A stretch of DNA of 64,000 bases from Malacoraja senta (lineage: Eukaryota), in contig JAXLNO010003320.1 in NCBI GenBank assembly GCA_038087875.1, forward strand, positions 62,001-126,000, in the 5' to 3' direction. The notes below the pieces were generated by a model. The model had not been told where the DNA came from. It saw only the letters and a list, made by a program, of their open reading frames with translations, and searched no databases. Position 1 is the stretch's first letter, and the number at the start of each line of letters is the position of its first letter. This document shows, in pieces, positions 16,976 through 56,892 of this stretch. Made by a program: the position numbers and the translations under genes.

Positions 16976-17007
<32 letters not shown>
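16030..17007 (+). mobile_element. GC-rich non-coding element with L2-like tail and (ATT)n
   Basis: GCCGCCATCTTG at 16041-16052, CpG-rich body, tail TGTAAGGTGTCCTTTGG...GAAAGGCGC, then (ATT)n at 16977-17007. Confidence 0.55.
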
Positions 17008-17199
17008 CAAAGAAAGTCTGCTCCTTGACCCGAGAGAACATGGAGTAAGGCCCATGTTTTGGGAGCCAATTCTGAAGGGAGCTGATACTTTCAATGTACA
17101 AGTGCAACGATTGGCACTCTGAGGAAAAGGGAGCTTGATGAACAAGACAAGTTCAGAAGTCATGAGCTAACTGGAACACTCATGACATGATAGCTATGC

Positions 17200-18248
17200 A
17201 TTCATCTCCCAGCTAACTTCAAAATGTAGTTTCCGCAAAGGATTGTCTCCACTGAATCTTCCATCTCTCTCCATATACCCATCCAATCTATTTTTAAATG
17301 ATAAAATCGTTTAAGGGTTCCTGCTTAACTCTCCTGAATCTTAAAACACAAGAGGGGAGCCCAGAAAAGAGTTCCCTGTGTCAGTTGGTACTGAGATTAA
17401 CTACCCCTATTCAGTTAAACTCTATCCAGTTAAATCCTGACCAGCCTCAGATCAATACTGATCCCCTATCACCAGTTAGAGTGAACCAAATTATCAAACA
17501 ATGTAAAGAAACATATTTGGAACATGGGGATAAAGAAACCAAAAGCCTAAGCAGATTAGAATGTTACCGTGCCCCAAAAAGAGATTATAAATTGGCAGAC
17601 TATCTCTCAACTGTTAGAGACATAAAGCAGAGACAGACCCTCACCAAATACAGGCTAAGTGACCACTATTTGGCAGTTGAAAAAGGAAAACAGAAGAGAT
17701 TCTGGCAACCAAGAGAAAGCAGAATATGCGGCCACTGTTTGACAGATGAGGTTCAAACAGAGGTGCACTTCCTCCTAAAATGCAAAAAAAATTGATAAAA
17801 CAAGGAAAACATACTTTGACAAACTCAGTCTGGCAACCACTGATTTCAAAGAACTAGTTGATACATCAAAACTAAGAATAATCCTTGGTGAAGGAAGTAC
17901 AGCACATCTTGGTGCACAATACGTAACAGCATGCCATAACCTGAGAGACGGTGAATGACCAATATGCACATATGTCGCACACATTAATTGACTAACTGAA
18001 ACTAAGAAATTAATATTGAATTGCTAAACTTGCTATCCTGTTGTACTGCTTACAGCAGCAAGAATGTGTAGCAATCAATAAAGGGCTATAGGCCTATTGC
18101 GAGTTTATGTACAGGGACATATCTATCCATGCACTATACTTGTATTTATACTTATGCATTTGAAATATGTATGTCATGTTTTATACTTTGGCAATATAAC
18201 AATGTATTTTTTTTTATCATGCCAATAAAGTTTTTTAATTGAAATTGA
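17200..18248 (+). mobile_element. Non-LTR retrotransposon 3' end with C-terminal CCHC finger (RTE-X-like; clade uncertain)
   Basis: ORF 17298-17795 reads LTKYRLSDH...ICGHC...ETEVHFLLKC. The 3' UTR ends GCCAATAAAG...AATTGAAATTGA at the gap. Confidence 0.65.
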
Positions 18249-18491
18249 NNNNNNNNNNNNNNNNNNNNNNNNNNNNNNNNNNNNNNNNNNNNNNNNNNNN
18301 NNNNNNNNNNNNNNNNNNNNNNNNNNNNNNNNNNNNNNNNNNNNNNNNNNNNNNNNNNNNNNNNNNNNNNNNNNNNNNNNNNNNNNNNNNNNNNNNNNNN
18401 NNNNNNNNNNNNNNNNNNNNNNNNNNNNNNNNNNNNNNNNNNNNNNNNNNNNNNNGCGGCAGAGAGACAGTGAGAGAGAGAGAGAGACAGA

Positions 18492-18524
<33 letters not shown>

Positions 18525-18670
18525 TGAGATAGAGAGAGGGANNNNNNNNNNNNNNNNNNNNNNNNNNNNNNNNNNNNNNNNNNNNNNNNNNNNNNNNNNN
18601 NNNNNNNNNNNNNNNNNNNNNNNNNNNNNNNNNNNNNNNNNNNNNNNNNNNNNNNNNNNNNNNNNNNNNN
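18249..18670. other. Assembly gaps (207 N and 129 N) flanking a (GA)n microsatellite at 18461-18541
   Basis: N runs at 18249-18455 and 18542-18670. Confidence 1.
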
Positions 18671-19047: not shown

Positions 19048-19283
19048 AGCATTATATAACGGTTTCCTCCGCCATAAATGCACCCAATATGTACTAGTAA
19101 TGTCCTGTTTGCCAGCTTGTTGACCCTCTGTGTTCCCCTCCTGCAGGGTTTAGGAGCCGTTGCTGTGGACGGAGAGACGGGGACGTGAGCGGCCATTGAG
19201 GGCGGCCAGGGTGCAGATGAGCCCCTCCCCCCCACCCCCCATCTGCTCGGTGTGCGGGCTGAGCTTCGAGGGGCTGCGCTTTG

Positions 19284-20427
19284 ATGGAGGACCACATGAG
19301 GGGGCACAACAAGGAGAAGCGTTATGAGTGCGACGTGTGTGGCAAGGCCTGGCAGTACCCGAGCCGGCTGGAGATCCACCGGCGGGTTCACACGGGAGAA
19401 CGCCCCTTCGACTGCTCCGACTGCGGCAAGAGCTTCAAGTCGCCGCCGGAACTGAAGATGCACAGGCGCCTGCACACCGGGGAACGACCCTACACCTGCA
19501 GCGACTGCGGCAAGGTCTTCACCCGCTCCAGCAACCTGCTGTCCCACCAGCGCACCTACACTGGCGAGCGCCCCTACACCTGCAGCGACTGCGGCAAGGG
19601 CTTCACCCGCTCCAGCAACCTGCTGTCCCACCAGCGCTCCCACACTGGCGAGCACCCCTATACCTGCGCCCAGTGCGGTAAGGGCTTCAACTCCTCCAGC
19701 AACCTGCTGTCCCACCAGCGCTCCCACACAGGCGAGCGCCCCTACACCTGCACCCAGTGCGGCAAAGGCTTCACCCACTCCAGCATCCTGCTGGTGCACC
19801 AACGCACCCACACCGGCGAGCGTCCCTACACCTGCGCCCAGTGTGGCAAGGGCTTCACTCACTCCAGAAGCCTGCAGGTGCACCAGCGCACCCACACCGG
19901 CGAGCGCCCCCTACACCTGTACCCAGTGCGGCAAGGGCTTCATCCAGTCTGGCAACCTGCTGTCCCACCAGCGCACCCACACCGGCGAGCGCCCCTACAC
20001 CTGTACCCAGTGCGGCAAGGGCTTCACCCGCTCCTGCACCCTGCTATCCCACCAGTGCACCCACACCGGCGAGCGCCCCTACACCTGTGCCCAGTGCGGC
20101 AAGGGCTTCACCCAGTCCGGTCACCTGCTGTTCCATCAGCGCACCCACACTGGTGAGCGCCCCTACACCTGCACCCAGTGCGGCAAGGGCTTCACCCGCT
20201 CCACCTATCATCTGTCCCACCAGCGGGTGCACGCCGGCGACGGTCCCATCCCCAGCCCGGTGTGTGGAGAGCGCTTTGCCATGGCCTCCCACCCCCTGTC
20301 TTACCAGCGCGTGCACAAAAGTGGCCAGCCCTACGACTGCCCGTACTGCGGTGAGGAGTTTGACAGCTCGCGGGGGTTGCGGCAGCACCAGCGGACCCAC
20401 GCCGGCGAGCAGCTGCTCCCACTGTAA
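19284..20427 (+). CDS. Tandem C2H2 zinc-finger protein, 13 fingers (2 degenerate), with a +1 frameshift at the C5 run 19907-19911
   Basis: ORFs 19281-20156 and 19843-20427 join into repeated CxxCGKGF...HQRTH fingers with TGERPY linkers. Acceptor ctgcag at 19141-19146; AATAAA at 20772-20777. No effector domain is seen. Confidence 0.85.
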
Positions 20428-20719
20428 CAAGAGAGCACGGGGGCTGCAGGAGCACCAGCGGATACACACCGGAGAGACACCCTATGTGTGCGCTGAGTGT
20501 GGCAAGGGTTTCACCAGCATGTCCAGCCTGTGGAAGCACCGGCGTACCCACAGCGGTGAGCGTCCCTTCCCCTGCCCGTCCTGTGGAAAGGGCTTCACCC
20601 GACTTGACCACCTGCTGGAGCACCGGCGAGTCCACACCGGTCAGCACCCCTTCACCTACCCGCTCTGTGGCAATGCCTTTGCCCGCTCCTCCAGCCTGCT
20701 TGCACACCGTTACTTTTAA
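20415..20719 (+). pseudogene. Out-of-frame zinc fingers downstream of the stop codon
   Basis: The frame of ORF 19757-20719 reads CSHCNKRARGLQEHQRIH-TGETPYVCAECGKGF...HRRTH-SGERPFPCPSC...HRRVH-TGQHPFTYPLC... Confidence 0.8.
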
Positions 20720-21559
20720 ATTTGCTGAAAAACAGAAAGCAGTCAAATTTAAAAGAGAATTTTCCCAGTAGAATAAAGTTATGGAAATCTTAGAAGCTTG
20801 GTTTCTACTAATCATTGAAACAATGTATTGACAATGTATTAACATAGAGATGTATTGTCTGGGCACAGCACCATATTAGATATGTGTCTGAACTGCCTGT
20901 CCCAGCTAAGGACAAGGTAGTGGCTTTCATCCAAGTCTTACAAGCTTGTTTTAGTTCACAGACGGATGCCCATTCTGGAACCAAGATGGAAGTCATTTGA
21001 AAACAAAATGGAGTTAGTTGTCCTTCCGGAATGGGCAGCTGTACTGAAGCTGTGCCTAGATTTGAGAATAAGGCTGACATTGCAAATATATGGGTCCAGC
21101 CTCCCTTGTTTCCCTTAGGCTACGGATCTTTCACTCAGATTTAGGTGTGTTTTTTTGATAAGAAAATGTATAATTAACTTTCCTTTGTTCTTTGAGTGGA
21201 GCCCAAGAAGCACTGAGCAACGTGTGTGCTCTTTATAGATCTCGCAACTCCCCCCTGGCAAATGTATTAAAATATTGCTTTGGTTTACCCTTAACAATTT
21301 TGTTGCTGTCTGCTTTCTTTAAGAGACGAACTTTGACAACTGTGCTCTTTGGAATTCTTCAGAATTAATGTTGCACTATCAATAATGAAAGAAAAATGCC
21401 AACCATCTCCAGAAATGACAAGAATTATTCTCGCCTCCATGCATATTTGTCGCCATAGGGCAGTCGGACACCTCCCCACTACTTCAAAGATAGTTCCTGC
21501 ACTTGGCAATATCGTTTGGTGTTTGGCGGCAGCAGGGCGACAGGCAGCCCGCACCCTGG

Positions 21560-22435
21560 TAAATCACCCCATTGTGGGGGTCCGGGGGGTGGGGGGGGTG
21601 AAGCACCCCATTGTGGGTGTCTGGGGGTGTGGGGGTGAATCACCCCATGTGGGGGTCCGGTGGGGGGAGTGAATCACCCCATTATGGGGGTCCGGGGGGT
21701 GGGGGGGTGAATCACCCCATGTGGGGGTCCGGAAGGGTGAATCACCACGGTGTGTGGGTCGGGTCGGGGGTGAATCACTCCAGTGTGTGGGTCGGGGGGG
21801 TGAATCAGCACTGTGTGAGGTTCGGGGGGAGGGTGAATCGCCATGGTGTGGGGTTCGGGGGGGGGGGTGAATCACTCCAGTGTGTGGTCGGGGGGGGGTG
21901 AATCACCACTGTGTGAGGATCGGGGGGGGTGAATCACCATGGTGTGTGGGTCGGGTCGGGGGTGAATCACTCAAGTGTGTGGGTCGGGGGAGGGGTGAAT
22001 AAGCACTGTCTAAGGTTCGGGGGGTGTGAATCCCCATGGTGTCGGGGTCGGGGGGGTGAATCACTCCAGTGTGTGGGTCGGGGAGGGGGATGAATCACTC
22101 CAGTGTGTGGGTCGGTGGGGGGGGGGGGTTGAATCACTCCAATGTGTGGGTCGGGGGGGGGTTGAATCACTCCATTGTGTGGGTCGGGGGGGGGGTGAAT
22201 CACCGCTGTGTGAGGTTGGGGGGTGAATTACCCCATTATGGGGGTCCGGGGGGTGAATCACCCCATGTGGGGGTCCGGGAAGGGTGAATCACCACGGTGT
22301 GTGGGTCGGGTCGGGGGTGAATCACTCCAGTGTGTGGGTCGGGGGGTGGGGGGTGAATCACCCCATATGGGGCTGGGGGGGGTGAATCACCCCGGTGCGT
22401 GGGTCGGGGGGGGGTGAATCACCCTGGTAGGGAGG
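21560..22435. repeat. G-rich minisatellite, about 27 units of 30-38 bp with core GGTGAATCAC
   Basis: A long G run followed by GTGAATCAC and a variable spacer recurs directly. Confidence 0.95.
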
Positions 22436-22624
22436 TCGTGGTGCCGGTGCAGCATGGTCAGTGACGCTGGGTGGGTGCAGGGACCAGTCTGTCCCCAACT
22501 CTGCTGCAGCTGACGGGGATGTTGCCGGGTTTATGGCCCCGTGTGTCCGCTGCCCGAAGCCGCGGCCCCGCTCCGTGTGTGTGTGTGTATGTGCGCTGCC
22601 GGCCCACAGCCCGTGACAGTGCGG

Positions 22625-23020
22625 TGGGAGCCAGGCCAGCTTGGGGGAGTAAGGTGGATGGGAGAGGTAGCCAGTTTGGGGGAGCAAGGGGAATGGGAGC
22701 CAGGCCAGCTTGGGGGAGTAAGGGGGATGGGAAATTGCCAGGTTCGGGGAGTAAGGGGAATCGGAGGTAGCCAGCTAGGGGGAGTAAGGTGAATGGGAGG
22801 TAGCCAGCTTGGGGGAATAATGGGAATGGGAGGTAGCCAGCTTGGGGGAGTAAGGGGATGGGAGGTAGCCAACTTGGGGGAGTAAGGGGGATGGATGGGA
22901 GGTAGTCAGCTTGGGGTAGTAAGGGGATGGGAGGTAGCCAGCTTGGGGGAGTAAGGGGATGGGAGGTAGCCAGCTTGGGGAGTAAGGGGATGGGAGGTAG
23001 CCAGCTTGGGGGAGTAAGGG
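22625..23020. repeat. G-rich minisatellite, about 12 units of about 32 bp (GGGAGGTAGCCAGCTTGGGGGAGTAAGGGGAT)
   Basis: Tandem copies are directly visible. Confidence 0.95.
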
Positions 23021-24375: not shown

Positions 24376-25440
24376 CTAAATGACTTCCTCGCTCTCCCTG
24401 ACCAGACGGAGTTCATCGAGCTGCTGCTCCAGGTTCCTAATACGGTCCATTAGGAGCCCCATCTCGATACACCTGGCGCAGATGTGGACGTCTGGAGGGC
24501 TATCAGACTCCATGACTTCCCACATCTGACATCCAGAACAGTAAACTGCCCTGGCCCTCATAATCCCCTTACCCTGGATACAATACATCTGACATCCAGA
24601 ACAACAAACTGCCCTGGCCCTCATACTCCCCTTACCCTGGATACAATACATCTGACATCCAGAACAACAAACTGCCCTGGGCCTCATACTCCCCTTACCC
24701 TGGATACAATACATCTGACATCCAGAACAACAAACTGCCCTGGGCCTCATACTCCCCTTACCCTGGATACAATACATCTGACATCCAGAACAACAAACTG
24801 CCCTGGCCCTCATACTCCCCTTACCCTTGATACAATACATCTGACATCCAGAACAGTAAACTGATACAATACAAAACAAACTGCTACAATACAGTACAAT
24901 CAGCAGGGATCTGACTCCCAATCAGCTGCTCCCTCTTGTCTGCGTCCACCAATCAGCGGCTTCCTCAAACCCACTTGTTTTTGAAGTGGAACTTGGAACG
25001 TTACAGATTTCGGTTCCTTTTTAACTCCTACCGGTCGTGTGTAGCTCCTCCCTCTGCGATCTCTCCAACGGCTCTTTGGACCTCTGTAAGGAACAAGCCC
25101 CGCGCTCCTTTTTATCTCCTACCGCTCGGGTGTAGCTCCTCCCTCTGCGATCTCTCCAACGGCTCTTTGGCCTCTGTAAGGAACAAGCCCCGCGCTCCTT
25201 TTTAAGTCCTACCGCTCGGGTGTAGCTCCTCCCTCTGCGACCTCTCCAACGGCTCTCGGGCCTCTGTAAGCAACAAGCCCCGCGCTCCTTTTTAAGTCCT
25301 ACCGCTCGGGTGTAGCTCCTCCCTCTGCGACCTCTCCAACAGCTCTCGGGCCTCTGTAAGCAACAAGCCCCGCGCTCCTTTTTAAGTCCTACCGCTCGGG
25401 TGTAGCTCCTCCCTCTGCGACCTCTCCAATGGCTATCTTC
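24376..25440 (-). mobile_element. Probable CR1 5' end: 90-bp tandem 5'UTR units and ORF1 N-terminus with 63-bp in-frame repeats
   Basis: ORF 24376-24921 ends ...CSGCQMWEV...CARC...LEQQLDELR, a CR1 ORF1-like zinc and coiled-coil start. There are five 63-bp units (24523-24860) and about 4.6 units of 90 bp (25027-25430). Confidence 0.7.
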
Positions 25441-41081: not shown

Positions 41082-41133
41082 ATGCTTCTTTTTACCTTAC
41101 TGAACACTTACGGTGTGGCCACTGTCTCCTCTG
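41082..41133 (+). CDS. MHC class I-like exon 1, leader peptide MLLFTLLNTYGVATVSS
   Basis: ATG at 41082, 17 codons plus G, then GTAAGC donor at 41134. G+AT gives Asp1 of alpha1. It lies about 140 bp below an X2/Y-box module. Confidence 0.75.
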
Positions 41134-41434
41134 GTAAGCAATACTGCTTCAACCTGTGAACTTTGAGGAAACAACAAAACTGATTATATTTACTGTTGCA
41201 CAGTGCCTGTGTTTGCCCTGGGTTCATTGTCTTGGATGTATTAATTGAATGATTGAATTGAATGTATTAATAATTTTGGGTAACGGTCTTTCCTTAGTTG
41301 TAAAGGCTCCTGTGGGAAGTTATATATACTATGGTTACCTTGGCAATCCATTGAACAGAAGAACTGAATACATGTAAATAATGAACATAGAACATAGTAC
41401 AATACAGCACAGGAGCAGGTCCTTCAGTCCTTCA

Positions 41435-41466
41435 GTCTGAAGAAGGGTCTCGACCCGAAACGTCAC
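41435..41466 (+). ncRNA. Minimal type I hammerhead ribozyme motif, sense strand of MHC intron 1
   Basis: CTGAAGA 41437-41443, AGGGTCTCGACCC, GAAACGTC ending at 41464; stem I is only 2 bp (GT/AC). Confidence 0.7.
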
Positions 41467-44400
41467 CCGTTCCTTTTCTCCAGAGATGCTGCCTGACCCG
41501 CTGTTACCTCAGCATTTTGTCTACCTTCGGCCCACAATGTCTGTGCCGAACAAACTAAACTAATCTCCTCTACCTGTATGTGATCTGTATCCGGCCATTC
41601 CCTGCCTATCTATGTACCTATCTAAAAGCCTCTGAAATGTAACTGTTATATCTGCCACCATCACCACAACCACCACTGGCAGCGCGTTACAGATGTCCAC
41701 CACCCTCCACATAAAACAACTTGCTCCGCTCATCTCCTTTGAACATTGCTTCTCCAACCTTAAAGTGATGTTCTCTGGTCTTCAACATTTCCACCCTGGG
41801 AAAAAGGTTCTGGCTGTCCACTCTGTCTGTGCCTCTCACCATGTTGTGCACTTTCATCAGGTCTCCCTTCAACCTCCAGTATACAAGAGAAAACAATCCA
41901 TGTTTGTCCAATCTGTCCTTGCACTAATGCCTCAGACAGAATTCAGGTGATGTGCACTTTCAATAAAGAAGTGACTTCTGCATTAGTAGGTGTTCCACCT
42001 CTCCAAGATTTCCTCAGCTGGTGTTAGACACCCACATGATGGTAAAATTCAGCCTGCATTAAATGACCAATCAATGTTGTGTTAATGTTGTTGCCATCTT
42101 GTTGTTTGTTGCATGCTTCCTGTCCTGCAGACCCTATCCATTACCCCATCACCACTTCCCCAGAAGACGATAATGAGATTTAAGAAGCTTGAGGATAGGC
42201 ACGTGGATATGCAGGGAATTGAGGGATATGAATCATCTACAAGCATGAAGAGTTTAGTTGAACTTGACATCATGTTCGGCACAGACATTGTGGCCGAACT
42301 CCAGCCCATTACACCCTTAATGAACAAAAATCTATCAATCTCAATCTGGAAATTTTCAAGTGGGCAACATATTCAACAGATTACAGAATCGAGAACCAGA
42401 GGACATAGGTTTAAATTGAGGGGGGAAAGATTGAATGGGAATCTGATGAGCAATTTCTTCCCACACAATGGTACCTTTCTAACTATTCTGACATTCATCA
42501 AGGCTTGGAGATTACAAACCTACTCGTCCTGAAAGTTTCATCCCATTGTTATCAAATGAAAGTAAATATAATGGTGTTAAAGAAGGAACTGCAGATGCTG
42601 GAAAATCGAAGGTACACAAAAATGCTGGAGAAAGTCAGCGGGTGCAGCAGCATCTATGGAGCGAAGGAAATAGGCAACGTTTCGGGCCGAAACCATATAA
42701 TGGTGATGGCCATGTTGAAATAATAACATATAAAACAAAAATCCTCGGCTGTGGAGTGTTTTGGGAAGCCACATGGATTTTATCGTTACTGTATTCCACT
42801 CTTAGCCGTCTTATGTTTCTCCTGGTAACACTGAAACAGACACTTCTAACTCTGCCCTCGGGGCCCCTTCTCACTTCACTTAAACACATGAACTTTGACA
42901 CTGTCTGGTGTGCTGCATGTAATCTTTATCACAGAACAAATACTGCTTATGCATGTGGAAACAAGAAACTGCACATGCTGGTTAATACACATAAAATACT
43001 GGAGTAATTCAGCAGGTCAGGCAGTATGTCTGGAGAACATGGTTAGGTGATGTTTCAGTTGACACAAGTGTAGGAAGGAAGTGCAGATGTGTAAGAAGGA
43101 ACTGCAGAAGCTGATTTAAACCGAAGATAGACAATAAAGCTGGAGTAACTCAGCGGCACAGGCAGCATCCCTAGAGAGAAGGTATGGGTGACGTTTCGGG
43201 TCGAGACCCTTCTTCTGACTGCTGATGCAGATGCTGGTTTACACCGAAGATAGATACAAAAGGCTGGAGTAACTCAGCAAGTCAGGCAGCATCGCTGGAG
43301 AAAAGGAATAGGTGGAGTTTCAGGTCAAGACACTGCATCAGACAGAGTCGGAGGTGCATATATTTCATTGTACTTTGTCATATCTCTCGGTTCTCTGTCC
43401 CCTGACTCTCATTCTGAAGAAGGGTCTCGACACGAAACGTCACCTTTTCCTTTTCTCCGGAGATGCTGCCTGACCCACTGAGTTACTCCAGTATTTTGTG
43501 TCGAGTTTCAATTTAGGCCCTGTTTATCTCAGTCTCCACCACCCCCCCCCCCCATCTCTATGAGCTGTGTTGCAGCTGCCTATGAGGACCTGGACTCAAT
43601 CCTGATCTCTTACAACCTGGCTTTTTTTTCCCCCTGCAAACGTGTGTTTGCTATGGTTATTCCAGTTTCCCCGCACGTCCCCAAAATGCCGGGCTGAAAG
43701 GTAAATTGGCCAGTGTGAATTGGTCATGCATATGTATTAGAATTGGTGGAGGGGATGAGGGAGGTGTTAATGGGAGATTGGCAAATATTAAAAGGGTTAG
43801 CGTACCACAGGTATAAATAGGTGTTTGATGGTCACCACGAACTTGGTGGGCTAAAGGGCCTTTTATGTGCTGTACCCAGTGAACATAAGTTTAAGATGAG
43901 GGGGGAATGATTTAATAGGAACCTGAGGCATAGCATTGTTACACAAAGGGTGGTGGGTGTACTGAATGAACTGCCGGAGAAGGTAGTTCAGGCGCGTACT
44001 ATCACGACATTTAAGAATCATTTAATCAGGTACATGGATAGGATAGGCTTATAAGGATATGGGCCTCAGTCAGCTGTAGAGCCCACATCAATGGATATTT
44101 CTCAGGTGGAGATTAACAGATTCTTGATCAGTATGGGTTTCAAGGGTTATGGGGTGCAGGCAGGAGAATGTGGTTGATAGGGAGAGATAGCTCAGCCATG
44201 ATTGAATGGCCGATGGGCTGAATGGCCTAATTATTCTCCTAGAACTTATGTACTGATGAAATACAGGTAGTGTAGATGAGGCATGTTGGTTGGTGTGGCA
44301 AGTTGAGCCATAGGCCCTGATTCCCTGCTGTATGACTCTTTGACTTTACCTCTCTATGATTCTATAAAGTCTCCTTGACATTGTCCAGTTTCTTAATATA

Positions 44401-44567
44401 ATAAAATATTCTTCAAATTTTGGAATATTGTAACTAGTAGAACCTATCGACATGATAGACAATAATAGATCTTTGAAGATGGGAAACAATCCAGTAGGAT
44501 CATTCAATACCTCGACCATAATTGGTGGAGTAGGTATCAGAGCCCATCATGCCAACTCTTGAAGAAG

Positions 44568-44875
44568 GCTCAGTGGTGCAGCGGTAGACTTACTCGATTA
44601 CAGCACCATAGACCCAGGTTGGATCCTGATTACGGATGCTGTCTGTACGGAGTTTGTCCATTCTCCCCATTACCGTGTGGGTTTTTCCCGAGATGTTCGG
44701 ATTCTTCCCACATTCCAAAGACGTATAGGTTTGTAGGTTAATTGGCTTGGTCTAGAATGTAAATTGTCCCTAGTGTGTGTAGGATAGTGTTATTGTGTGG
44801 GGGTTGCTGGTCAGTGTGGACTCGCACGAAGGGCCTGTTTCCATGCTGTATCTCTAAGCTAAAAACTAAACTAAA
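44568..44875 (+). mobile_element. HE1-type SINE in MHC intron 1
   Basis: Same family motifs. Confidence 0.8.
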
Positions 44876-45065
44876 GGCTCCTGACCCAAATTGTCACCTG
44901 ATCATTGATGCTGCCTGCCCCACTGAGTTCATCCAGCACTTGCATCTGCAGGTCCTTGTGACTCCCTTATTCAAAGTTATTGTATTGTTATCAGTTTTAG
45001 CATTAATAACTTAGTTATTTTCAGTGAATGATACAATCATACTTATTTTTGTTTATGCATTGCAG

Positions 45066-45326
45066 ATTTACACCATCTTGCATTTTACTACCTGTTGAAC
45101 CATGGATTGAATGAGCTGCCTGAGTACAGTATGGTAGCAATGCTGGATGACGTCCAGATAGCATATTTTGACAGCACACTAGAGCGGGCTGTTCCCAGAC
45201 AGCGATGGATGGCCCAGTCTTTCCCGCATGATCACTGGGATTCAATGGCCATCACAGTTGCAGGTTTTCATGGGATTGTCAGAGGAAATGCTGAGATAGT
45301 CTACCAACAGCAACATGGTATCTCGA
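45066..45326 (+). CDS. MHC class I-like exon 2, alpha1 domain
   Basis: Acceptor ttgcag at 45060-45065, donor GTAAGT at 45327, 261 bp. Translation DLHHLAFYYLLNHGLNELPEYSMVAMLDDVQIAYFDSTLERAVPRQRWMAQSFPHDHWDSMAITVAGFHGIVRGNAEIVYQQQHGIS keeps class I motifs (H3, PE, DD-Q, FDS, P-W-M, WD). Confidence 0.92.
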
Positions 45327-45589
45327 GTAAGTGTCGTGAGCGGACCTGGGGTAGACACTCAGTGATGACACAGATGGATTTTGTTTTAGTTTTATTGTTG
45401 ACACATGATTCTCTGATACACTTTTTTTGCGTTAGTCAATCACATCAAAGAAAACTATTCATAAATACAATCAAACCAAACTCGTACAATAGGTAGAGCA
45501 AAGAGTGCAGAATGTAGTTCTCAGCATTGTAATGTACCAGTGCCAGAGACAAAGTCCAGTGTCTACAATGGGGTTGAGGTGAACCCTAG

Positions 45590-46010
45590 CATAAGGGAGG
45601 ACTGTTCAGAAACCTGATAACATAGGGGAGGAAACAGTTACTGAGTCTGGTGGTGCACGCTTTAATGCTTACGTACCTTCTGCAGGAAGAAGGAGTGACC
45701 AGAACGGGACAAATCTTTGATTATGTTGTCTGCTTTCCTGAACCAGTTGAAATACAGATGGATTCACTGGTGGGGAATCATGTTTGTGTGATCGACTGTG
45801 CTACATCTCCACCTCTCTGCAAATTTCCAGCGGTCTTGGGCAGAACTCTTTCCAAACTAAGTTGTGATGCAACCTGTCAGTATGCTTTCTATGGCACATT
45901 TGTAGAAGTTTGTAAGAGTCATTGGAGATGCCGCATTTCCTTAGTCTCCTGAGGCAGTAGGGGAACCAGAAACTCTCAACCTTTTTCACTTCAGCACCAT
46001 TGATGCTGTT
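45590..46010 (-). mobile_element. Rex1/Babar-type LINE 3' fragment in MHC intron 2
   Basis: Degenerate LRRLRKCGI segment followed by typical downstream Rex1-like sequence. Confidence 0.6.
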
Positions 46011-47071
46011 TCAGACATTTACTCCATAACATTTTGATAGAGACACGGCCCATCGTCTATATTTAATGTGTCCTAACTGCTGAACACACAGTCATAACAG
46101 TTGGCTGGTGATAGTCTCTTTATGGGTTAAGCATTTGATATTCAACACCAGTAATAAGTGGATGGATTGGATCATCTGTTTTGTTGGGCTGGAATGAGGG
46201 AGAAACCATTAGTTTATTTATAGCCTGATCATCTAGAGATGGGATCTTGATTTAAGCTGGTTGATGGTGACTATGAGGTATTCCCTCAGTAATAATATTG
46301 TGTTAATCCAGCATCCCCTCAATATTGGCAACAATCCTCAGAGGGTGTAGCAATCCCACACAGTGCAACAGCCTTGATGTACTTCCCATCTGCATTGCCT
46401 TAACCTTCAGACTGACCTGTTGGCTCTGTAGCATTGCCCATCTGACAATGCACTTCTTCCTCTGTTCTTTATGTACGACAGTGCAGAATCTGAGTTCCAC
46501 CCTTCTGACACAGCAGAACTCCTTTAGTGTTACATCCGCAACAGTAAAGCTCCCCCCCATAACACTTGAGGTTAGTCCATGCCCTCAGTATATAGACCAT
46601 GGGTTATTGAGTCACACATCATGGAAACCGGCCCTTCTGCTCACTGATTCCACATTGATCATCCATTGTGCTAAGATGGAGTCACAGCAAACTGCAGATG
46701 CTGCCAATCTGAATTTAAAACAAACAGGAGGAACTCAACGAGTCAGGCAGCATGCTGTGGAAAAATGGACAGAAAACATATGAGACCAGGACCATTTAGA
46801 GTGATGGGGTAGAGTGGAGAAAGCTGGAAAAGAAAAGTAGTCTGTGTAGGATAGTGTTAATATGCGGGGACCACTGGTCGGTGCGGACTCGGTGGGCCGA
46901 AGGGCCTGTTTCCGCGCTGTATCTCTGAGCTAAACCTGCTCCTGTGCTGTACAGCTCCATGTTGTGTTCTGTTATGCCTGTTTGTACCATGCTGAGAACT
47001 GATTTGTAAATTGCCTCTCCCTTCCATCCACTCTCCCCAACACAAATCCTCCACCCCTACCTCAGCCCCAG

Positions 47072-47347
47072 CTGTTTGCTTTGTGCAGGGTTTCTGCGGC
47101 TGTGAAGTGGACAGTGACAATTCCACTGATGGGTTTGTCAGACTGGGTTATGATGGGGAGGATGCCTGTGCTTTTGACAAGGACAGAATGCGCTGGATTG
47201 CACTACGTCCAGATTTCCAGATGCTAGCAGATCGGTGGAACGTCAACACCTTCATGAACAAGTATTTTAAAGATCTCCTGGAGAAGGACTGTGTGAAGTG
47301 GCTGCGGATATATATGGAGTGTGGACAAGAAGCACTACAGAGGAGAG
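47072..47347 (+). CDS. MHC class I-like exon 3, alpha2 domain
   Basis: Acceptor ccccag, donor GTACAC at 47348, 276 bp. Translation TVCFVQGFCGCEV...GYDGEDACAFDKDRMRW...ADRWN...DCVKWLRIYMECGQEALQRR. Confidence 0.95.
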
Positions 47348-47449
47348 GTACACGACGTAGGCACTCTGACTGATGGGCCAGAGGATATCCTCTGGATAGA
47401 TCAGGTGGGAAATATCATGCACTTCAGGCTGTCACTTGAGTAATTATTT

Positions 47450-47740
47450 AGTTTAGTTTAGAGATACAGCGCGGAAACCCACCGAGACCGCACCGAGCAG
47501 CCATGCCCGCACACTAACACTATCCTACACACACTAGGGACAATTTGCATTTATACCAATCCAATTAACCTACAAATTTGTACGTCTTTCGAGTGTGAGG
47601 GGAAACCGAAGATCTCGGATAAAACCCACGCAGGTCACAGGGAGAACGTACAAACTCTGTAAAGACAAGCACCCGTAGTTAGTAACAAACCCAGGTCTCT
47701 GGCGCTGTAAGGCAGTAGCTCCACCGCTTCGCCACCCTGT
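47450..47740 (-). mobile_element. HE1-type SINE in MHC intron 3
   Basis: Same family motifs. Confidence 0.85.
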
Positions 47741-48551
47741 TCTACAACGTGGGTATCAGTAAATTGTCTGGCAACGTGCCTCTTAGATGGAACCAGTGGG
47801 TAGGAAGTGCAAGTGAAAGATAAATATTGTACCAGTGTCCTTTATCCACAGTCATATAGATATTCAGGAAATGGAGGAATATGTATCTTGGTCTTATGTT
47901 TAGCACCGACCTTGTGGCCTGAAGGGTCTGTTGCTGAACTGATCAGAAACCCAATCAGATTCTCTATTTGCCTCTATTACTCCTTGGGATGGTGACATTC
48001 AATTTCCAACAGTTCTCTATTTGAAGAACTTCTTCCTCCCATTCCCTCTTGGAATATTTAGTGTTATTATTCAGCAGAGATTCATGAACAGGTAGAAGCA
48101 ATCATGTCTACAGTATCAATCCCAATGGTGAGTTATACTCCTCCATTGGGCCTGCATTCCCCTTTCATCTGTGCTGTCAGTTAAGGTCTGGAGCTAAGAT
48201 AAGGAGCATGTCAGTGATATTAAAGCTAAATGTTTTGTTGTTTTGCCAGAAATGCAAAATGAAAAGAGAAAAGGCTGTAAACTTTGTGCAAGATAGAACT
48301 GCAGATGATGGTTTACACTGAAGATAGAAGATGTTGGTGTAACTCAGTGGGTCAGATAGCATCTCTGGGCATTCCTTCTCTCCAGAATGCTGCCTGACCT
48401 GCTGAGTTATTCCAGCATTTTGGGTCTAGGCTGAAAACTTAGTTCAGCCAGAGAAAAAACTCTGATTGGGAAAGTGGTGAGTTGCAGTGATCTTACAATT
48501 GAAGGCTTTTGTTCATGTCTTCACTGATTCTGACTCTTCTTACACTTGCAG

Positions 48552-48824
48552 AAACCCCTGAGGTGTTTATTGGGATTAAACGTGATGGGTCGCAATCACT
48601 GAGACTCTCCTGCCTTGTCACAGGCTTCTAGCCACGGGCCATCGATGTAACGTGGCTGAGAGATGGTGAGGGGGTCCATGAGTCTGAATCCAGTGATCTG
48701 TTGCCCAATTGGGATGGGACTTACCAGCTGAAGAATACAATTCAACTGAATAGAGAAGATGTGGCAAAATTCTCCTGTTACATCGAACATGCAACTCTGC
48801 TGCAGGGAGTCAATGTTCCACAGG
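48552..48824 (+). CDS. MHC class I-like exon 4, alpha3 Ig-C1 domain with premature stop
   Basis: Acceptor ttgcag, donor GTAAGT at 48825, 273 bp. Translation ETPEVFIGIKRDGSQSLRLSCLVTGF*PRAIDVTWLRDGEGVHESESSDLLPNWDGTYQLKNTIQLNREDVAKFSCYIEHATLLQGVNVPQ. The stop keeps it off the ORF track. Confidence 0.93.
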
Positions 48825-48919
48825 GTAAGTGGCAAGTCAATGAGGCTGATCACTTGAGACCATAAACCTCCTGGACTGAGATAACAGTCTCAACTCACAC
48901 TCTTAACTAAGCTGTGGAT

Positions 48920-49560
48920 TTAGACTTTAGGCTTTAGAGATATGCTGCAGATACAGGCCCCTCAGCTCACTGAGTCCTCGCTGAATAGTGATCAACCCAT
49001 ACATTTACACTAACCTACACAATACGGACAATTTACAATTTTACCTAAGCCAAGTAACCTACAAACCTGTATGTCTTTGTAGTGTGGGAGGAAACCCACG
49101 CAGTCACAGGGAGAACATACAATGTCCTTGCAGACAGCACCTGTAGTCAGGATCAAACCCAGGTCTCTGGTGCAGTAAGGCAGCAGCTCTACCGCTACGC
49201 CACTGTGCCACCCATTATTAATTTGTGGTTATCTAATTGCTCATAATTATTGATAGTCAATGGAATGTGGTTTTAGTTTAAGAGATACAGCGCAGAAACC
49301 GGCCCTTCAGCCCACCGAGTCTGCGTCAACCAGCGATCCCTGCACACTTACATTATCTTACTTATTAGGGGACAATTTACAATTATACCAAGCCAATTAA
49401 CCTACAAACCTGTATGTCTTTGGACTGAGTGAGGAAACCGGAGATCCAGGCAAAACCCACGCAAGTCCCGGGGAGAAGGTACAAAACTCTGTACAGACGG
49501 GACCCGTAGTCAGAATTGAACCGGGTCTCTGGCGCTGTAAGGCAGCAGTTCCACCGAGTG
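48920..49560 (-). mobile_element. Two tandem HE1-type SINEs in MHC intron 4
   Basis: Copies at about 48920-49212 and 49275-49560. Confidence 0.8.
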
Positions 49561-50018
49561 GGCAAAGCAGAGCCAAATGGAATACAGTGTAGCAAGTGTC
49601 TGGTTTTACATTTTGGCAGTCGGAATAAAGACATAGACTATTTTCTAAATGGGGAGAGAATTGAGAAACCTGAGCTACAAAGTGGGAGTACTAGTGCAGG
49701 ATTCCCAAATAGTTCATTTGCAGATTGAGTCAGTGGTAAGTAAGGCAAATGCAATGCCAGCATTCATTTCGGGGGGCGTAGAATATAAAAACAATGATAT
49801 AATGCTGAGGATTTATCGGGCACTGGTGAAGACACATTTGGAATATTGTGAGCAGTTTTGGGCTCCATATTAGAAAGGATGTGCTGGCTTTGGAGAGGGT
49901 CGAGAGGATGTATGTCCTGGGGATGATTGATTTAACGTATGAGGAGTGTTTGAAGTCTCTGTGCCTGTGCTCATGGGATTTAGAAGGTTGAGGTGGGAAT
50001 CTCATTGAAACCTACCAG

Positions 50019-53000
50019 CAGGGCCGGATTTAGATGAAGAGAGGCCCTAAGCTGTTCCACTTGTGAGGCCCCCCCCCAATCCCCCACCCCCACGACCAGA
50101 GGAAGATGGTCCACCAGATTGACACCGATTTGCAGCCGAGCGTGGCCAATGAGATAAGGGGCTGGAAAGCTGGGCTTTATTTATTTATTTATTGCCACTG
50201 CTAGTGTCGAGTTATTGGCTTAAAACACTATTATTCTGAAATGGAGGGCAAGGAAAATTACTGAAGTGTTGTTTAGAGACTACAGTGCGTTGTGACAGCA
50301 TATGTAAGAAAGGCCTATGACAGTGTCAAAAATATTATACACCTTGCAGGGCTCTCACTTAATTTTTTTTCTCTGTTGTCAGCCGGGCAACCTTGGTAGC
50401 TTTATAAGTTGCCAAATGACAGTTTAGGTGGTTATTTAAGATGGCTTGCATGACACGTGCGATAATGTGCTCACACGACCAGTCAGAATTATGCTCAATG
50501 AAGCATTCACATATTATTTCTGCTTCAAATAAAGCCACAAACTAAACATATTCACCAATCAGGACATGATATATACCACAATGACATGCAGCACAATTAT
50601 AATACTGTATCTTAACTCTTTTTACACGTTGCAATGAATGCAATTTCTATTATTTCTTTCCACTTCCAAAAAAAAATGTGGTTGGATTATTCAGCGTATG
50701 ATCAACCTCGGTGAGACCAAGTGCAGGCTTGGCGATTGCTTCGCACAACACCTCCACTCAGTTCGCAATAACCAACCTGATCTCCCGGTGGCTCAGCACT
50801 TCAACTCCCCCTCCCATTCCGAATCTGACCTTTCTGTCCTGGGCCTCCTCCATGGCCAGAGTGAGGCCCACCGCATATTGGAGGGGCAGCACCTCATATT
50901 TGCTTGGGTAGTTTACACCCCAGCGCTATGCACATAGGCTTCTCTAATTTCAGGTAGTCCTTGCTTTCTCCCTCCTTCCCCTCCCATTCCCAGCTCTCCC
51001 ACAGCCTACTGTCTCCGTCTCTTCCTTTATTTTTCATGTCATTCCCCCCCCCCCCCGACATCAATCTGAAGAAGGGTCTCGACCCGAAACATCGTCTATT
51101 CCTTCGCTCCACAGGTGCTGCCTCACCCGCTGATTTTCTACAGCTTTTTTGTCTACCAATGGGATCCCACAACAGGCCACATCTTCTCATCTCCTCCCCT
51201 GTTGGCTTTCCATAGAGACCGCTCCCTCCGTAACTCCCTGGTCAATTCGTCCCTTCCCACCCAAACCACCCCCTCTCCTGGCACTTTCCATTGCAACTGC
51301 AGGAAATGCTACACTTGGCGTTTTAATTAAGTTCAAGACAATGGGGCTGTACATTGGCCATAAGGTTGCTGCCTAAAAGTGCCAGAGACCTGGAATTTAT
51401 CCTGAATATGGGTGTTGTCTGTTTGGAGTTTGCTCCTTTTCACTTTGATCGCATGGGTTTTCTTCGGGTGCTCTTGTTTCCTTCCACATTCCAAAGGTGT
51501 GCAGGAACCTATTTCAGAACCAACCCTAAACGTAATATTTCCCTTTTGTCCAGAGATTCTGTCTGACCTGTTGAGTTACTCCAGCTTTGTGTGTCTATCT
51601 TCAGTTTAAACCAGCATCTGCAGTTCCTTCCTACACACACGATACTATACGATAGAACTTTATTAATCCCAGGAGGGAAATTGTGTGTGTGTGCGTGTGG
51701 GTATATATACTATGCACACACACACACACATATATATATACAATACAATTACAATACAATTTTATTTGTCTTTTGGACAAATTTGTCATTTGGACCCCGT
51801 TGAGGTCCAAACGAAATGTCGTTTCTGCAGCCATACATTACAAAACGAAGAAGACCCGATACACAACACAATTTACACATACATCCATCACAGCGCTGTG
51901 ATGGAAGGCAAAAAAACGTATCTCTCCACTGCACTCCCCCCCCCCCCACCCCCCCGATGTCAGAGTCAAAGTCAAAGCCCCCGGCGGGCGATGGTGATTA
52001 TCCCGCGGCCATTAAAGCCACGCCGGTTAATGCAGGGTCGCGCACCGCGTCTTGGTGTTAGAGCCCCGGCGCGCGCTCGCAAAGTCCGGCGGCCATTCCA
52101 AGCCGCGCGGGGCGGTGATGTAAAGCCCCCCTCCAGGTGCTCTTCAACCCCGCAACTCGGGCGGGAGAAGTCGCCGCTGCGGATGCCCCGAAAAGTGGTG
52201 TCCCACCAGGGGACCCACGGGCTTCCGGTGTTGCCGTCCGCCAGACCCGCGGTTGTAGCCTCCGAATCTCCGGGGGTCGGGTAGCAGCAGCGATTGTCTC
52301 CACCACAGCTATAAATATACACCGTTTTGTTTTCTCGTTTATAACATTGTTTACAGAGTACTATGTTTACATATTCTGTGGTGCTGCTGCAAGTAAGGAT
52401 TTCATTGTTCTAACTGGGACGTGAGAGAATAAACTCTTGACTCTTGACTTACTTCGCTAATGTGTGGGAAAGAACTAGTGTACGGGTGATCAATAGTCGG
52501 CGTGGACTCGGAGGGCTGAAGGGCCTGTTTCCACGCTGTATCTTCAAATTAAGCTAAAGACACTAAAACCAGAGGGAGTCTAATGAAGTGTTTCTACCCG
52601 AAACGTCACCCAATTTCTTCTATCCTGAGTTGCTGGCTGCTCCATGGAGTTCCCCCGCACAATTAAAGCATGGAATAGTCTTCACCCTACCATAGTTACC
52701 CAACCAGACGCAACTAAATTTAAGGTACCTCTTTTTTCCCCAAGAACCCTTTTTTGCTTAAGTCCAAGTCAAGAGTCAAGAGAGTTTTATTGTCATGTGT
52801 CCCAGATAGGACAATGAAATTCTTGCTTGCTGCAGCACAACATAATATGTGAACATAATACAGAACAGGAGATAAAAGTTCAGTGTGTCTATATACTATA
52901 GACCATATATATACACAATAAATAAACAGATAAAATGCAATAGGCTGTTATTGTTCAGCCCTCTACCACCTCCAGTTTAAATTCCTTTTAGAATATTTAT

Positions 53001-53534
53001 GGAGGATCAGGAAACCAGAAGCGAGAGTTACTCCAGGGAGATACTCCTGATCCAGGGTCAGGGAGTGATTCTGTGTTAGTTTTCAGCGGTTGCGGCGAGG
53101 CAGCAATGGCGGCCAAATCTCCCACAATTCAAAGCGAGGGAGAAAGTGCCCAGCGCCGACCAGTTGCCGTGGCAGTGCGCATGCGCAGGGCGGCCGATGA
53201 CGTGCGGGCTGTGGTTGTGCGCATGTGCAGGGGAGGACGTGCGGGCTGTGGTTGTGCGCATGTGCAAGGCGGCCGGCCGTGCTGGCGGATGAGGAGCGAG
53301 CGGAGAACGGAGACCCGGACACGGAGAGTGACAGACGGAGATAGAGATAGAGAGGGGGGCCGCCCCGCCCAGAGTTGAACGGCTGGTGTCCTGCCTTGGC
53401 CGGAGGCCCCCTATATTTCAGGGCCCCAGGCTTCAGCCTATGAAGCCTAGTGGTAAATCCGGCTCTGCGAGCCCCTCCTAGATCTCCAGGCCCTAAACTG
53501 AAGCTTGTCCATCTTATATGTAAATCCGGCCCTG
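50019..53534. mobile_element. Non-autonomous hAT-type element in MHC intron 4, carrying nested repeats
   Basis: 14-bp TIRs CAGGGCCGGATTTA (50019-50032, 53521-53534) and an 8-bp TSD CCTACCAG (50011-50018, 53535-53542). It interrupts a CR1 fragment. Confidence 0.9.
50705..51330 (+). mobile_element. Penelope-like element fragments (GIY-YIG C-terminus, pLTR with hammerhead motif, linker fragment)
   Basis: GETKCRLGDCFAQHL...LPVAQHFNSPSHS...LSVLGL...EGQHLIF, then CTGAAGAAGGGTCTCGACCCGAAACATC at 51066-51093, then AFHRDRSLRNSLV...CNCRKC. Confidence 0.85.
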
Positions 53535-54898
53535 CCTACCAGATAATGAAATGCCTGGTTAGTTGATGGGAAAGGAAGTTTTCAGTAATGGGAGAGTCTA
53601 GCACAGCCTCACAATAAAAATACCTACCTTCAATATGGAGATGAGGAGGAATCTCTTTAGTCACAGGGTGGTGAATCTGTGGAATTCATTGATACAAACA
53701 GCTGTGTGGGTCAAGTCATTGCATATTTTTCAAGCAGAGATTGATAGGTTCTTGATGAGTACGGGTGACAAAGGTTACAGGGAGAAGGCTAGAGAATGGG
53801 ATTTAGCGGTAAAAAATAGATCTGCTATGACTGAATGGTGGAGTAGACTCAATGGACTTGAAAGGCATAATTCCGCTCCAATATCTTATGGTCAAAATTA
53901 TTCTTATGTCACCCTTAACTCACCCATCCAAATGTAGGAACAGTGGAAGCAAGATAGGCTGATCCTGGACAAGGTCTCTTATCTTCTTCCTTGGGCATCT
54001 AGCTAATTTTCTGATAGTAGCTAGTTACACAAAAGACCAATAGTGGTGCCATATTATCAGGCTGAAGTAGCAGCACCTGTTCTGTAGCTGACTTATTTGT
54101 TCCAGACAAGACCTCTGCAAAGATCTTCACACCAGGGCCAAGCTGACATGGTTAAGATTGCTGGTCAGTACAAATAGACAGTAGTGTTAATGTCTGTGTG
54201 TGCCTATGTGTGTATGTGTGTGTGGGCTCATGTGTGTGAGACAGTGAGGGGGAGAGAGAGAGAAAGAGAGAGCATGTGTATGTGAGAAAATTAAACTCAG
54301 ATATCATTGAAATATCAGCAAAGATTAAAACCTTTGAAGTTTTATCAACTATAAATGGGTTCACTTTTATTTGCTATAATAACAATCAACATAAGAAAAT
54401 GGCCTTGTTGACCTCTACACTGTAAATAGTCATATATTTCTGACGTACTTGATTCTTTAAATTCTTAATTAAATGCTGCAGATAAAATCTCAATACCTCA
54501 ATGCTAATATGAACTTAATGATTTTTCATTGATCATTTTAAGCACATCCATCCTCTGTATAAATACTTAAATCTAAAACGTTATTACTTTTTAATTAGAT
54601 ATGAACAGTGCTACTTTAATTTAGATAATAAAATCATTACAATGTTGTTATTGATCACTAAATGTTTAAAATGCACTATACAGTGGCTTGCAAAAGTTTT
54701 CATACCCCTTGAACTTTTCCACATTTTGTCACGTTACAACCACAAACGTAAATGTATTTTATTGGGATTTTATGTGATAGACCAACACAAAGTGGCGCAT
54801 AATTGTGAAGTGGAAGGAAAATGATACATGGTTTTCAAATTTTGTTACAAATAAAAAACTGAAAAGTGTCGCGTGCAGAAGTATTCAGCCCCCCTGAG

Positions 54899-55920
54899 TC
54901 AATACTTTGTAGAACCACCTTTCGCTGCAATTACAGCTGCAAGTCTTTTGGGGTATATCTCTACCAGCTTTGCACATCTAGAGACTGAAATTTTTGCCCA
55001 TTCTTCTTTGCAAAATAGCTCAAGCTCAGTCAGATTGGATGGAGAGCATCTGTGAACAGCAATTTTCAAGTCTTGCCAGAGATTCTCAATTGGATTTAGG
55101 TCTGGACTTTGACTGGGCCATTCTAACACATGAATACGCTTTGATCTAAACCATTCCATTGTAGCTCTGGCTGTATGTTTAGGGTCGTTGTCCTGCTGGA
55201 AGGTGAACTTACGCCCCGGTCTCAAGTCTTTTGCAGACTCTAACAGGTTTTCTTCCAAGATTGCCCTGTATTTGGCTCCATCCATCTTCCCCCATCAACT
55301 CTGACCAGCTTCCCTGTCCCTGCTGAAGAAAAGCATCCCCACAGCATAATGCTGCCACCACCATGTTTCACAGTGGGGATGGTGTGTTCAGGGTGATGTG
55401 CAGTGTTAGGTTTCCGCCACACATAGCGTTTTGCATTTAGGCGAAAAACTTCAATTTTGGTCTCATCTGACCAGAGCACCTTCCTCCACATGTTTGCTGT
55501 GTCCCCCACATGGCTTGTGGCGAACTGCAAACGGGACTTCTTATGGGCTTTTTTCAACAATGGCTTTCTTCTTGCCACTCTTCCATAAAGGCCCGATTTG
55601 TGGAGTGCACGACTAATAGTTTTCCTGTGGACAGATTCTCCCACCTGAGCTGTGGATCTCTGCAGCTCCTGCAGAGTTACCATGGGCCTCTTGGCTGCTT
55701 CTCTGATCAATGCTCTCCTTGCCCGGCCTGTCAGTTTAGGTGGACGGCCATGTCTTGGTAGGTTTGCAGTTGTGCCATACTCTTTCCATTTTCGGATGAT
55801 GGATTGAACAGTGCTCCGTGAGATGTTCAAAGCTTGGGATATTTATTTATAACCTAACCCTGTTTTAAACTTCTCCACAACTTTATCCCTGACCTGTCTG
55901 GTGTGTTCCTTTGGCTTCAT
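54899..55920 (-). pseudogene. Tc1 transposase, disrupted
   Basis: MKPKEHTRQVRDKVV... from ATG at 55920, with motifs WSDETK, QDNDPKH and [11 protein letters not shown]. Nonsense TAA at 55843-55845 and a frameshift in a C run near 55289. Confidence 0.92.
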
Positions 55921-56000
55921 GATGTTGTTTGTTCACTAATGTTCTCTAACAAACCTCTGAGGCCTTCACAGAACAGCTGTATTTATACTGAGATTAGATT

Positions 56001-56353
56001 AATAATAATAATAATAATAATGGATGGGATTTATATAGCGCCTTTCTAATACTCGGCGCTTTACATCGCATTATTCATTCACTCCTCAGTCACACTCGGT
56101 GGTGGTGAGCTACTTCTGTAGCCACAGCTGCCCTGGGGCAGACTGACGGAAGCGTGGCTGCTAATCTGCGCCTACGGCCCCTCCGACCACCACCAATCAC
56201 TCACACACATTCACACACATTCACACGCAGGCAAAGGTGGGTGAAGTGTCTTGCCCAAGGACACAACGACAGTATGCACTCCAAGCGGGATTCGAACCGG
56301 CTACCTTCCGGTTGCCAGCCGAACACTTAGCCCATTGCGCCATCTGTCGTCCC
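56001..56353 (-). mobile_element. tRNA-derived SINE with CORE-like middle and L2-like tail, nested in the Tc1
   Basis: On the minus strand: A box TGGCGCAATGG, B box GGTTCGAATCC, GTGTCCTTGGGCAAGACACTT, tail GAAAGGCGCTATATAAAT and (ATT)n. Flanked by a short (G)AGATTA duplication. Confidence 0.85.
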
Positions 56354-56671
56354 GAGATTACACACAAGTGGACTCTATTTACTAATAAGGTGACTTCTGA
56401 AGGCAATTGGTTGCACTGGATTTTATTTAGGGGTATCAGAGTAAAGGGGGCTGAATATTTTCGCACGCGACACTTTTCAGTTTTTTATTTGTAAAAAAAT
56501 TTGAAAACCATGTATAATTTTCCTTCCACTTCACAATTATGTGCCACTTTATGTTGGTCTATCACATAAAATCCCAATAAAATACATTTACGCTTGTGGT
56601 TGTAACGTGACAAAATGTGGAAAAGTTCAAGGGGTATGAATACTTTTGCAAGCCACTGTATATGCCAACAG

Positions 56672-56892
56672 AGAGGGCAGTGAAAGAAGATATGAAGATT
56701 AGGATCGTGACTGGAGCTGTAATTGTTCCTCTCATTCTCCTGGGGATCATCCTTGGAATTGGTTGCTGGAAGAAGAGGAAAAAGAGAAAACCTTTCAATG
56801 AACAGGTACCAGCTGACAACAGCAGAGACCAGGAGAGGACCATGAAGCACAATCAGCTTCCTTTGGGATGCAGAGGAGGTCTACCGGAATGA
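56672..56892 (+). CDS. MHC class I-like exon 5, connecting peptide, TM and cytoplasmic segment (3' boundary uncertain)
   Basis: Phase-1 acceptor caacag at 56666-56671. Translation ERAVKEDMKIRIVTGAVIVPLILLGIILGIGCWKKRKKRK gives a hydrophobic helix and basic stop-transfer cluster. The exon ends either at a possible donor at 56806 or at TGA 56890-56892. Confidence 0.8.

Follow-up and report, generated by a model that had tools for sequence, protein, structure and literature searches.

A skate MHC class I-like gene with a nonsense codon in its alpha3 exon: probable young pseudogene or null allele

Does a stop codon in the alpha3 exon of an otherwise open MHC class I-like gene mean that the gene has been lost, or could such a gene persist by leaving this exon out of its transcript? 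The question is raised by a locus in the stretch of skate DNA analysed here (64,000 nt, hereafter the window), for which the original prediction had proposed a recent null allele, a pseudogene or a gene expressed mainly as an alpha3-less isoform. MHC class I families turn over by birth and death, and null alleles due to nonsense or frameshift changes in exon 4 occur in HLA and other class I genes. Alpha3-less splice forms of class I-like genes, such as MR1B and HLA-G4, also exist. Throughout, the window gene is compared with an intact copy (L001) and a dead copy (L002) from Leucoraja erinacea (little skate) and with the Pristis (sawfish) ortholog (L003).

Gene structure and the nonsense codon

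The window contains one MHC class I-like gene of five exons (41082-56892, plus strand), with one domain per exon as in MHC class I-like heavy chains. All introns are GT-AG, all junctions are in phase 1 and all eight splice sites are intact. The features of the locus are as follows.

41082..41133, plus strand: exon 1, ATG and 17-residue leader; ends in phase 1 with a GTAAGC donor; shared with L001 (100-151) and Pristis L003
45066..45326, plus strand: exon 2, alpha1; 261 nt, phase 1-1; Pfam MHC_I; 9ch4_A at E 4.4e-22; 95.6% nucleotide identity to L001
47072..47347, plus strand: exon 3, alpha2; 276 nt, phase 1-1; MHC_I match
48552..48824, plus strand: exon 4, alpha3 Ig C1-set domain; 273 nt, phase 1-1; consensus acceptor and GTAAGT donor
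48629..48631, plus strand: in-frame stop (TAG) at codon 223, at the position of the GFYP Tyr; TAC in L001, L002 and Pristis L003
54681..56658, minus strand: Tc1-type transposon of 1978 bp, 13 nt upstream of exon 5; TA duplication and inverted repeats
56672..56892, plus strand: exon 5, connecting peptide, transmembrane segment and cytoplasmic tail; TGA at 56890-56892; weakened acceptor tract

The alpha1 and alpha2 exons are readily assigned. Pfam MHC_I matches alpha2 with an E value of 5.3e-16, above the cut-off, and alpha1 with 2.4e-5, and the PDB matches of the two exons include hundreds of class I chains. The alpha2 disulfide (equivalent to Cys101-Cys164) can be recognised by its two cysteines, in GC(E) and DC(V)KW, which match those of MR1 and class I chains in the alignment. 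Exon 4 is 93.7% identical at the DNA level to the alpha3 exon of the intact Leucoraja erinacea gene. Its portion 3' of the stop matches the Pfam C1-set (E 6.9e-9), and both members of the alpha3 Cys pair are present (LSCLV and FSCYIEH) in a domain interrupted by the TAG. A tblastn search of the window with all pieces of the gene, in which a second alpha3 or transmembrane exon was sought as a replacement, returned only the known exons.

Two minor observations concern the same exons. Alpha2 (47072-47347) carries six cysteines, and three of the four extra ones are common to relatives; the CGC motif is family-wide and the cysteines of EDAC and ECG are restricted to rays and some sharks, while a Cys replacing a conserved Phe near the start of the domain is specific to the window copy. 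In the cytoplasmic tail, a 9-nt in-frame deletion (56830-56840) relative to L001 and Pristis has removed three residues after QERT.

The codons at the site, GGC TTC TAG CCA, read Gly-Phe-stop-Pro where the C1-set motif has GFYP. The stop is in frame, as originally predicted, and exon 4 otherwise translates without interruption. In the spliced coding sequence of 1083 nt (360 codons) it is the sole internal stop, the four remaining exons being open as had been claimed. The Tyr of GFYP is retained in all 12 aligned relatives. Since the codon is TAC in both Leucoraja erinacea copies and in Pristis, the change is a single C-to-G transversion specific to the window copy. It lies outside any homopolymer, in agreement with the original reading of a single-base nonsense change, and is not located at a CpG.

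Between the end of the stop and the exon 4 donor, the last junction of the gene, lie 193 nt; the distance previously calculated is correct, with the small amendment that the last base of exon 4 is 48824 and the GT occupies 48825-48826. Translation of a normally spliced mRNA would terminate at codon 223. The predicted product comprises the leader, alpha1 and alpha2 together with the initial 25 residues of alpha3, and has neither the remainder of the Ig fold nor a membrane anchor or tail. According to the 50-55-nt rule, premature stops located farther upstream of the last junction trigger nonsense-mediated decay. By this rule the expected fate of the transcript is decay, or at most the production of an anchorless fragment of 222 residues.

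Several routes by which the reading frame might be rescued were considered. The C-to-G change creates an AG after a pyrimidine-rich run; however, use of this potential acceptor at the TAG would cause a frameshift and a stop after 12 codons. Neither stop-codon readthrough nor A-to-I editing of the UAG finds support in the sequence. When the part of exon 4 downstream of the stop, with read-through into the intron, served as query, no candidate protein fragments of other individuals or of transcripts were retrieved.

Relatives of the window gene

A protein-library scan with the alpha2 exon retrieved XP_055486430.1, which is 94% identical, and a second, fragmentary model, both from Leucoraja erinacea. 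The locus of XP_055486430.1 ("MHC class I-related gene protein-like, partial"), on scaffold JAMYXN010000384.1, is the intact copy L001. Like the window gene, it has five exons with phase 1 junctions, the same leader, the family-specific cysteines and the tail. The two loci are colinear over more than 21 kb, from the leader exon to at least 5.8 kb beyond the stop codon, with 88-96% identity in exons and 85-92% in introns. Unlike the window copy, L001 encodes an intact protein (363 codons when spliced at the same sites), with TAC at the position of the stop. It lacks both the Tc1 element and a 4.3-kb insertion found in intron 4 of the window gene, and has a 4.8-kb insertion of its own in intron 3. 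The other Leucoraja erinacea copy, L002, is plainly dead: its alpha2 contains a TGA, its alpha3 has undergone a 3-nt deletion and lost the donor, and alpha1 is missing. L001 and L002 may be paralogs or orthologs of the window copy.

The insertions can be placed more precisely. That of the window (about 4.3 kb, 50018-54379) is missing from L001, and that of L001 (about 4.8 kb, 13656-18480) is missing from the window. Intron 4 measures 7.8 kb in the window and about 2.7 kb in L001.

When the search was repeated with the Leucoraja erinacea protein, it revealed a conserved lineage of rays and sharks with 54-72% identity and mostly one match per species. Its members, labelled "MR1-like" at NCBI, come from Pristis, Mobula, Hypanus, Pristiophorus, Heptranchias, Scyliorhinus, Stegostoma, Hemiscyllium, Mustelus, Cetorhinus and Chiloscyllium. 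They share long invariant blocks in alpha1 and alpha2 and retain GFYP, and the long-term dN/dS of the lineage is 0.22. In contrast to the single match found in most other species, skates have at least two or three copies, of which the window copy is broken. The lineage thus appears to be mostly single-copy elsewhere and expanded in skates.

In spite of the NCBI label, this lineage is not MR1. MR1 is defined by Lys43, which forms a Schiff base with the ligand. The position of this residue (TRQKEPRAPW) is occupied by Ala in the Leucoraja erinacea protein (LERAVPRQRW), and the window copy has the same Ala. The lineage has a hydrophobic groove. For every domain the closest solved structure is 9ch4_A ("Ig-like domain-containing protein"), with E values of 4.4e-22 for alpha1, 6.9e-15 for alpha3 and 2.9e-60 for the whole Leucoraja erinacea protein, and it has GFYPQ at the equivalent position. 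Its similarity is visibly lower than that of the shark orthologs, so that it probably represents a neighbouring lineage; a literature search for a paper on PDB 9CH4 found none. Among the class Ib families described in sharks, UBA and UEA are multicopy, whereas UDA, UFA and UGA are single- or low-copy, UFA and UGA being CD1-like (PMC12562908, PMC10751288).

Some public gene models of the lineage appear to be flawed. That of Leucoraja erinacea is "partial" although a conserved ATG leader exon lies upstream (L001 100-151), and it reads 14 intronic codons between alpha2 and alpha3 (L001 12984 onward). The Pristis model starts with another N-terminus, even though the conserved leader exon occurs at that locus as well (L003 4581-4632, 92% nucleotide identity to exon 1 of the window gene).

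Selective constraint and splice signals

If the gene encoded an alpha3-less molecule, constraint on alpha1 and alpha2 would be expected alongside the decay of alpha3. Changes specific to each copy were assigned by three-way parsimony between the window gene, L001 and L002 over alpha2 and alpha3 (549 nt), with the following result.

Window copy: 12 specific changes, 6 in alpha2 (4 N, 2 S) and 6 in alpha3 (4 N including the stop, 2 S)
L001 (intact): 11 specific changes (7 N, 4 S)
L002 (dead): 25 specific changes (18 N, 7 S)

The changes of the window copy are equally divided between the two domains. Those in alpha2 include the replacements F-to-C, L-to-R and L-to-M at conserved positions, the first two of which affect residues nearly invariant among 11 orthologs. 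Pairwise dN/dS between the window copy and L001 is 0.60 for alpha1, 0.37 for alpha2 and 0.78 for alpha3, against long-term skate-sawfish values of about 0.26, 0.11 and 0.37, respectively. The rise over the skate-sawfish level is thus 2.3-, 3.4- and 2.1-fold. The increase is general rather than limited to alpha3, and alpha2 shows the strongest one. The specific relaxation of alpha3 relative to alpha1 and alpha2, for which a dN/dS comparison had been suggested, is therefore not observed, and the platform domains do not show the pattern expected of an alpha3-less molecule.

Introns provide a further reference for the rate of change. In 2471 aligned intron columns (blocks 2-5, three copies), lineage-specific substitutions number 67 in the window, 156 in L001 and 175 in L002. 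For the window copy, the 12 changes in the 549 nt of exon sequence correspond to an exon/intron ratio of 0.81, compared to 0.32 for the intact L001 and 0.64 for the dead L002. The probability of at least 12 exon changes under L001-like constraint is 0.004. The window copy is thus probably less constrained than intact L001, although the case is not strong, as it depends on the shorter intron branch of the window and on small counts. When the sawfish is used as outgroup over the whole coding sequence, the window copy shows 14 N : 7 S and L001 16 N : 8 S, which is the same N:S split.

The intron branches themselves are unequal: over 46111-49547 that of the window is 2.7% and those of the Leucoraja erinacea copies are 6.3% and 7.1%. 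The three lengths fit no clock-like tree. Slower evolution of the region, gene conversion or a difference of species might be responsible.

With respect to splicing, the original prediction was right that exon 4 can be skipped without loss of frame, all junctions being in phase 1. When 47347 is spliced to 56672, the Glu codon at the junction is retained and the result is an open frame of 269 codons encoding leader, alpha1, alpha2, transmembrane segment and tail. However, because every exon is phase 1-1, such a frame-keeping skip is generic to class I genes and is no specific feature of this locus. The acceptor tract of exon 4 (pyrimidine fraction 0.72) and its donor (AGG|GTAAGT) do not differ from those of the intact copy and of Pristis, so that nothing in the splice signals favours skipping.

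The acceptor of exon 5 has changed. Its pyrimidine content (positions -20 to -3) has fallen from 0.72 in L001 to 0.56 in the window, making it the weakest tract in the gene. The weakening results from the Tc1 insertion together with T-to-A changes, and the region where the branch point is usually located has been replaced by transposon sequence. The weakened acceptor, which any transcript of the gene requires, including one in which exon 4 is skipped, is a possible second lesion of the window copy.

The Tc1 element (54681-56658), which is absent from L001, has terminal inverted repeats of about 213 bp that are 95.8% alike and is flanked by a TA target duplication. The transposase, on the minus strand, is split into two overlapping frames (54902-55294 and 55243-55842). 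The 4.2% difference between the two arms indicates that the insertion next to exon 5 is not new.

Age and explanation of the loss

If the whole window-specific branch (2.7%) had been neutral, about 29 substitutions, 1.2 new stops and 3.9 indels (about 3 of them frameshifts) would be expected. The window coding sequence shows one stop, no frameshift and a single in-frame deletion of 9 nt in the tail. The probability of finding no frameshift on a fully neutral branch is 0.043. A simple likelihood for the neutral fraction of the branch has its mode at 0.23 and its median at 0.36, with 95% of the weight below 0.85. The lack of frameshifts suggests that the frame remained under protection along most of the branch and that the inactivation is fairly recent.

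The most probable explanation, to which a probability of about 0.8 may be given, is that the window copy is a non-functional skate member of an old and conserved elasmobranch lineage of non-classical MHC class I genes, either as a fixed young pseudogene or as a null allele. The multi-copy state of the lineage in skates and the change of the exons at near their own intron rate suggest that, before its loss, the copy was probably a duplicate with partial redundancy, on which constraint had already weakened. A single C-to-G change turned the TAC codon of the alpha3 GFYP Tyr into TAG, and the transcript would be removed by nonsense-mediated decay. As the open frame was probably kept free of frameshifts until fairly recently, the loss would be young. 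Only one clearly disabling mutation is found. Young class I pseudogenes and null alleles with a single lesion in exon 4 are common, and the situation resembles that of HLA and other class I null alleles and pseudogenes, in which one disabling change of the alpha3 exon occurs in an otherwise intact gene; the HLA null alleles belong to another species and another lineage than the skate copy.

An alternative is that the locus functions as an alpha3-less protein of 269 residues with the layout of EPCR, ULBP or MR1B, exon 4 being skipped, possibly through nonsense-associated altered splicing. The open frame across the skip and the freedom of the alpha1, alpha2 and transmembrane exons from stops and frameshifts are compatible with this idea. 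However, the frame-preserving skip would be available to all class I genes, exon 4 retains a strong acceptor and a GTAAGT donor identical to those of the intact copy, and a skipped transcript would still depend on the weakest splice site of the gene. Moreover, window-specific changes are as numerous in alpha2 as in alpha3, with F-to-C and L-to-R at near-invariant sites, and dN/dS has risen in alpha1 and alpha2 as much as in alpha3. The likeness to EPCR, ULBP/RAET1 and MR1B is limited to the hypothetical alpha1-alpha2-transmembrane layout after skipping: in the EPCR and ULBP genes the alpha3 exon is absent and the platform is adapted, whereas the window gene has exon 4 with its splice sites, and its alpha1 and alpha2 are not specially conserved. 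The platform shares about 95% of its sequence with the platform of a copy whose alpha3 is normal, and so bears no sign of adaptation to the lack of alpha3 and beta2-microglobulin. A functional alpha3-less product is consequently very unlikely, and it is most improbable that the TAG-bearing gene has been kept because it is expressed mainly as an exon-4-skipped alpha1-alpha2-transmembrane protein. Were this true, and had lesions confined to alpha3 also arisen independently in other paralogs, skates would have turned a three-domain antigen-presenting molecule of the CD1/MR1 type repeatedly into a two-domain receptor of the EPCR/ULBP type. The null allele or pseudogene of the original prediction thus fits everything that could be tested, while its isoform is unsupported and is at odds with the selective constraint observed.

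Two other explanations concern the nature and the age of the lesion. The TAG could be an error of base calling or polishing, or else a variant of the sequenced animal that is somatic or very rare; the locus of the species would then encode an intact protein. It is indeed a single base in a gene whose remainder is intact, and multi-copy regions are prone to mis-polishing. However, modern assemblies rarely contain substitution errors outside homopolymers, the related copies compared all have TAC and could not have donated the G, and the signs of weakened constraint and the damaged exon 5 acceptor are independent of this base. Such an origin is highly improbable. Conversely, the gene could be an old and long-dead duplicate that has drifted neutrally since its origin. 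An exon rate of about 0.8 of its own intron rate, the 4.2% divergence of the Tc1 arms beside exon 5 and the radical changes at conserved alpha2 sites would agree with an early death. Against this, one stop and no frameshift in 1080 nt compare with expectations of about 1.2 and about 3 under neutrality (P = 0.043), the eight splice sites are all intact and the sole indel of the coding sequence is in frame, which makes an early death unlikely.

As a young pseudogene or null allele, the window copy matters little in itself, and the use of the result is in annotation, where the copy should not be counted as a functional member of the lineage. The expansion in skates, with at least one intact and two broken copies, is of interest beyond this single lesion and could help to date MHC gene turnover in skates.

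Several repeated sequences occur elsewhere in the window. A C2H2 zinc-finger array at 19263-20700 consists of 84-bp tandem units with about 10 fingers and, being repetitive and GC-rich, is open in several frames. The open reading frame at 19263-20153, used as a query, matched only generic zinc-finger proteins, at 40-63% identity. Two runs of N, at 18249-18455 (207 bases) and 18542-18670 (129 bases), have flanks that translate as Ser/Leu- or Arg/Glu-rich simple repeats. G-rich minisatellites of 33/64 bp extend over 21558-23020, and two very regular minisatellites are located at 24522-24863 (63 bp, 5.4 copies, 97% match) and 25015-25434 (90 bp, 4.7 copies, 95% match).
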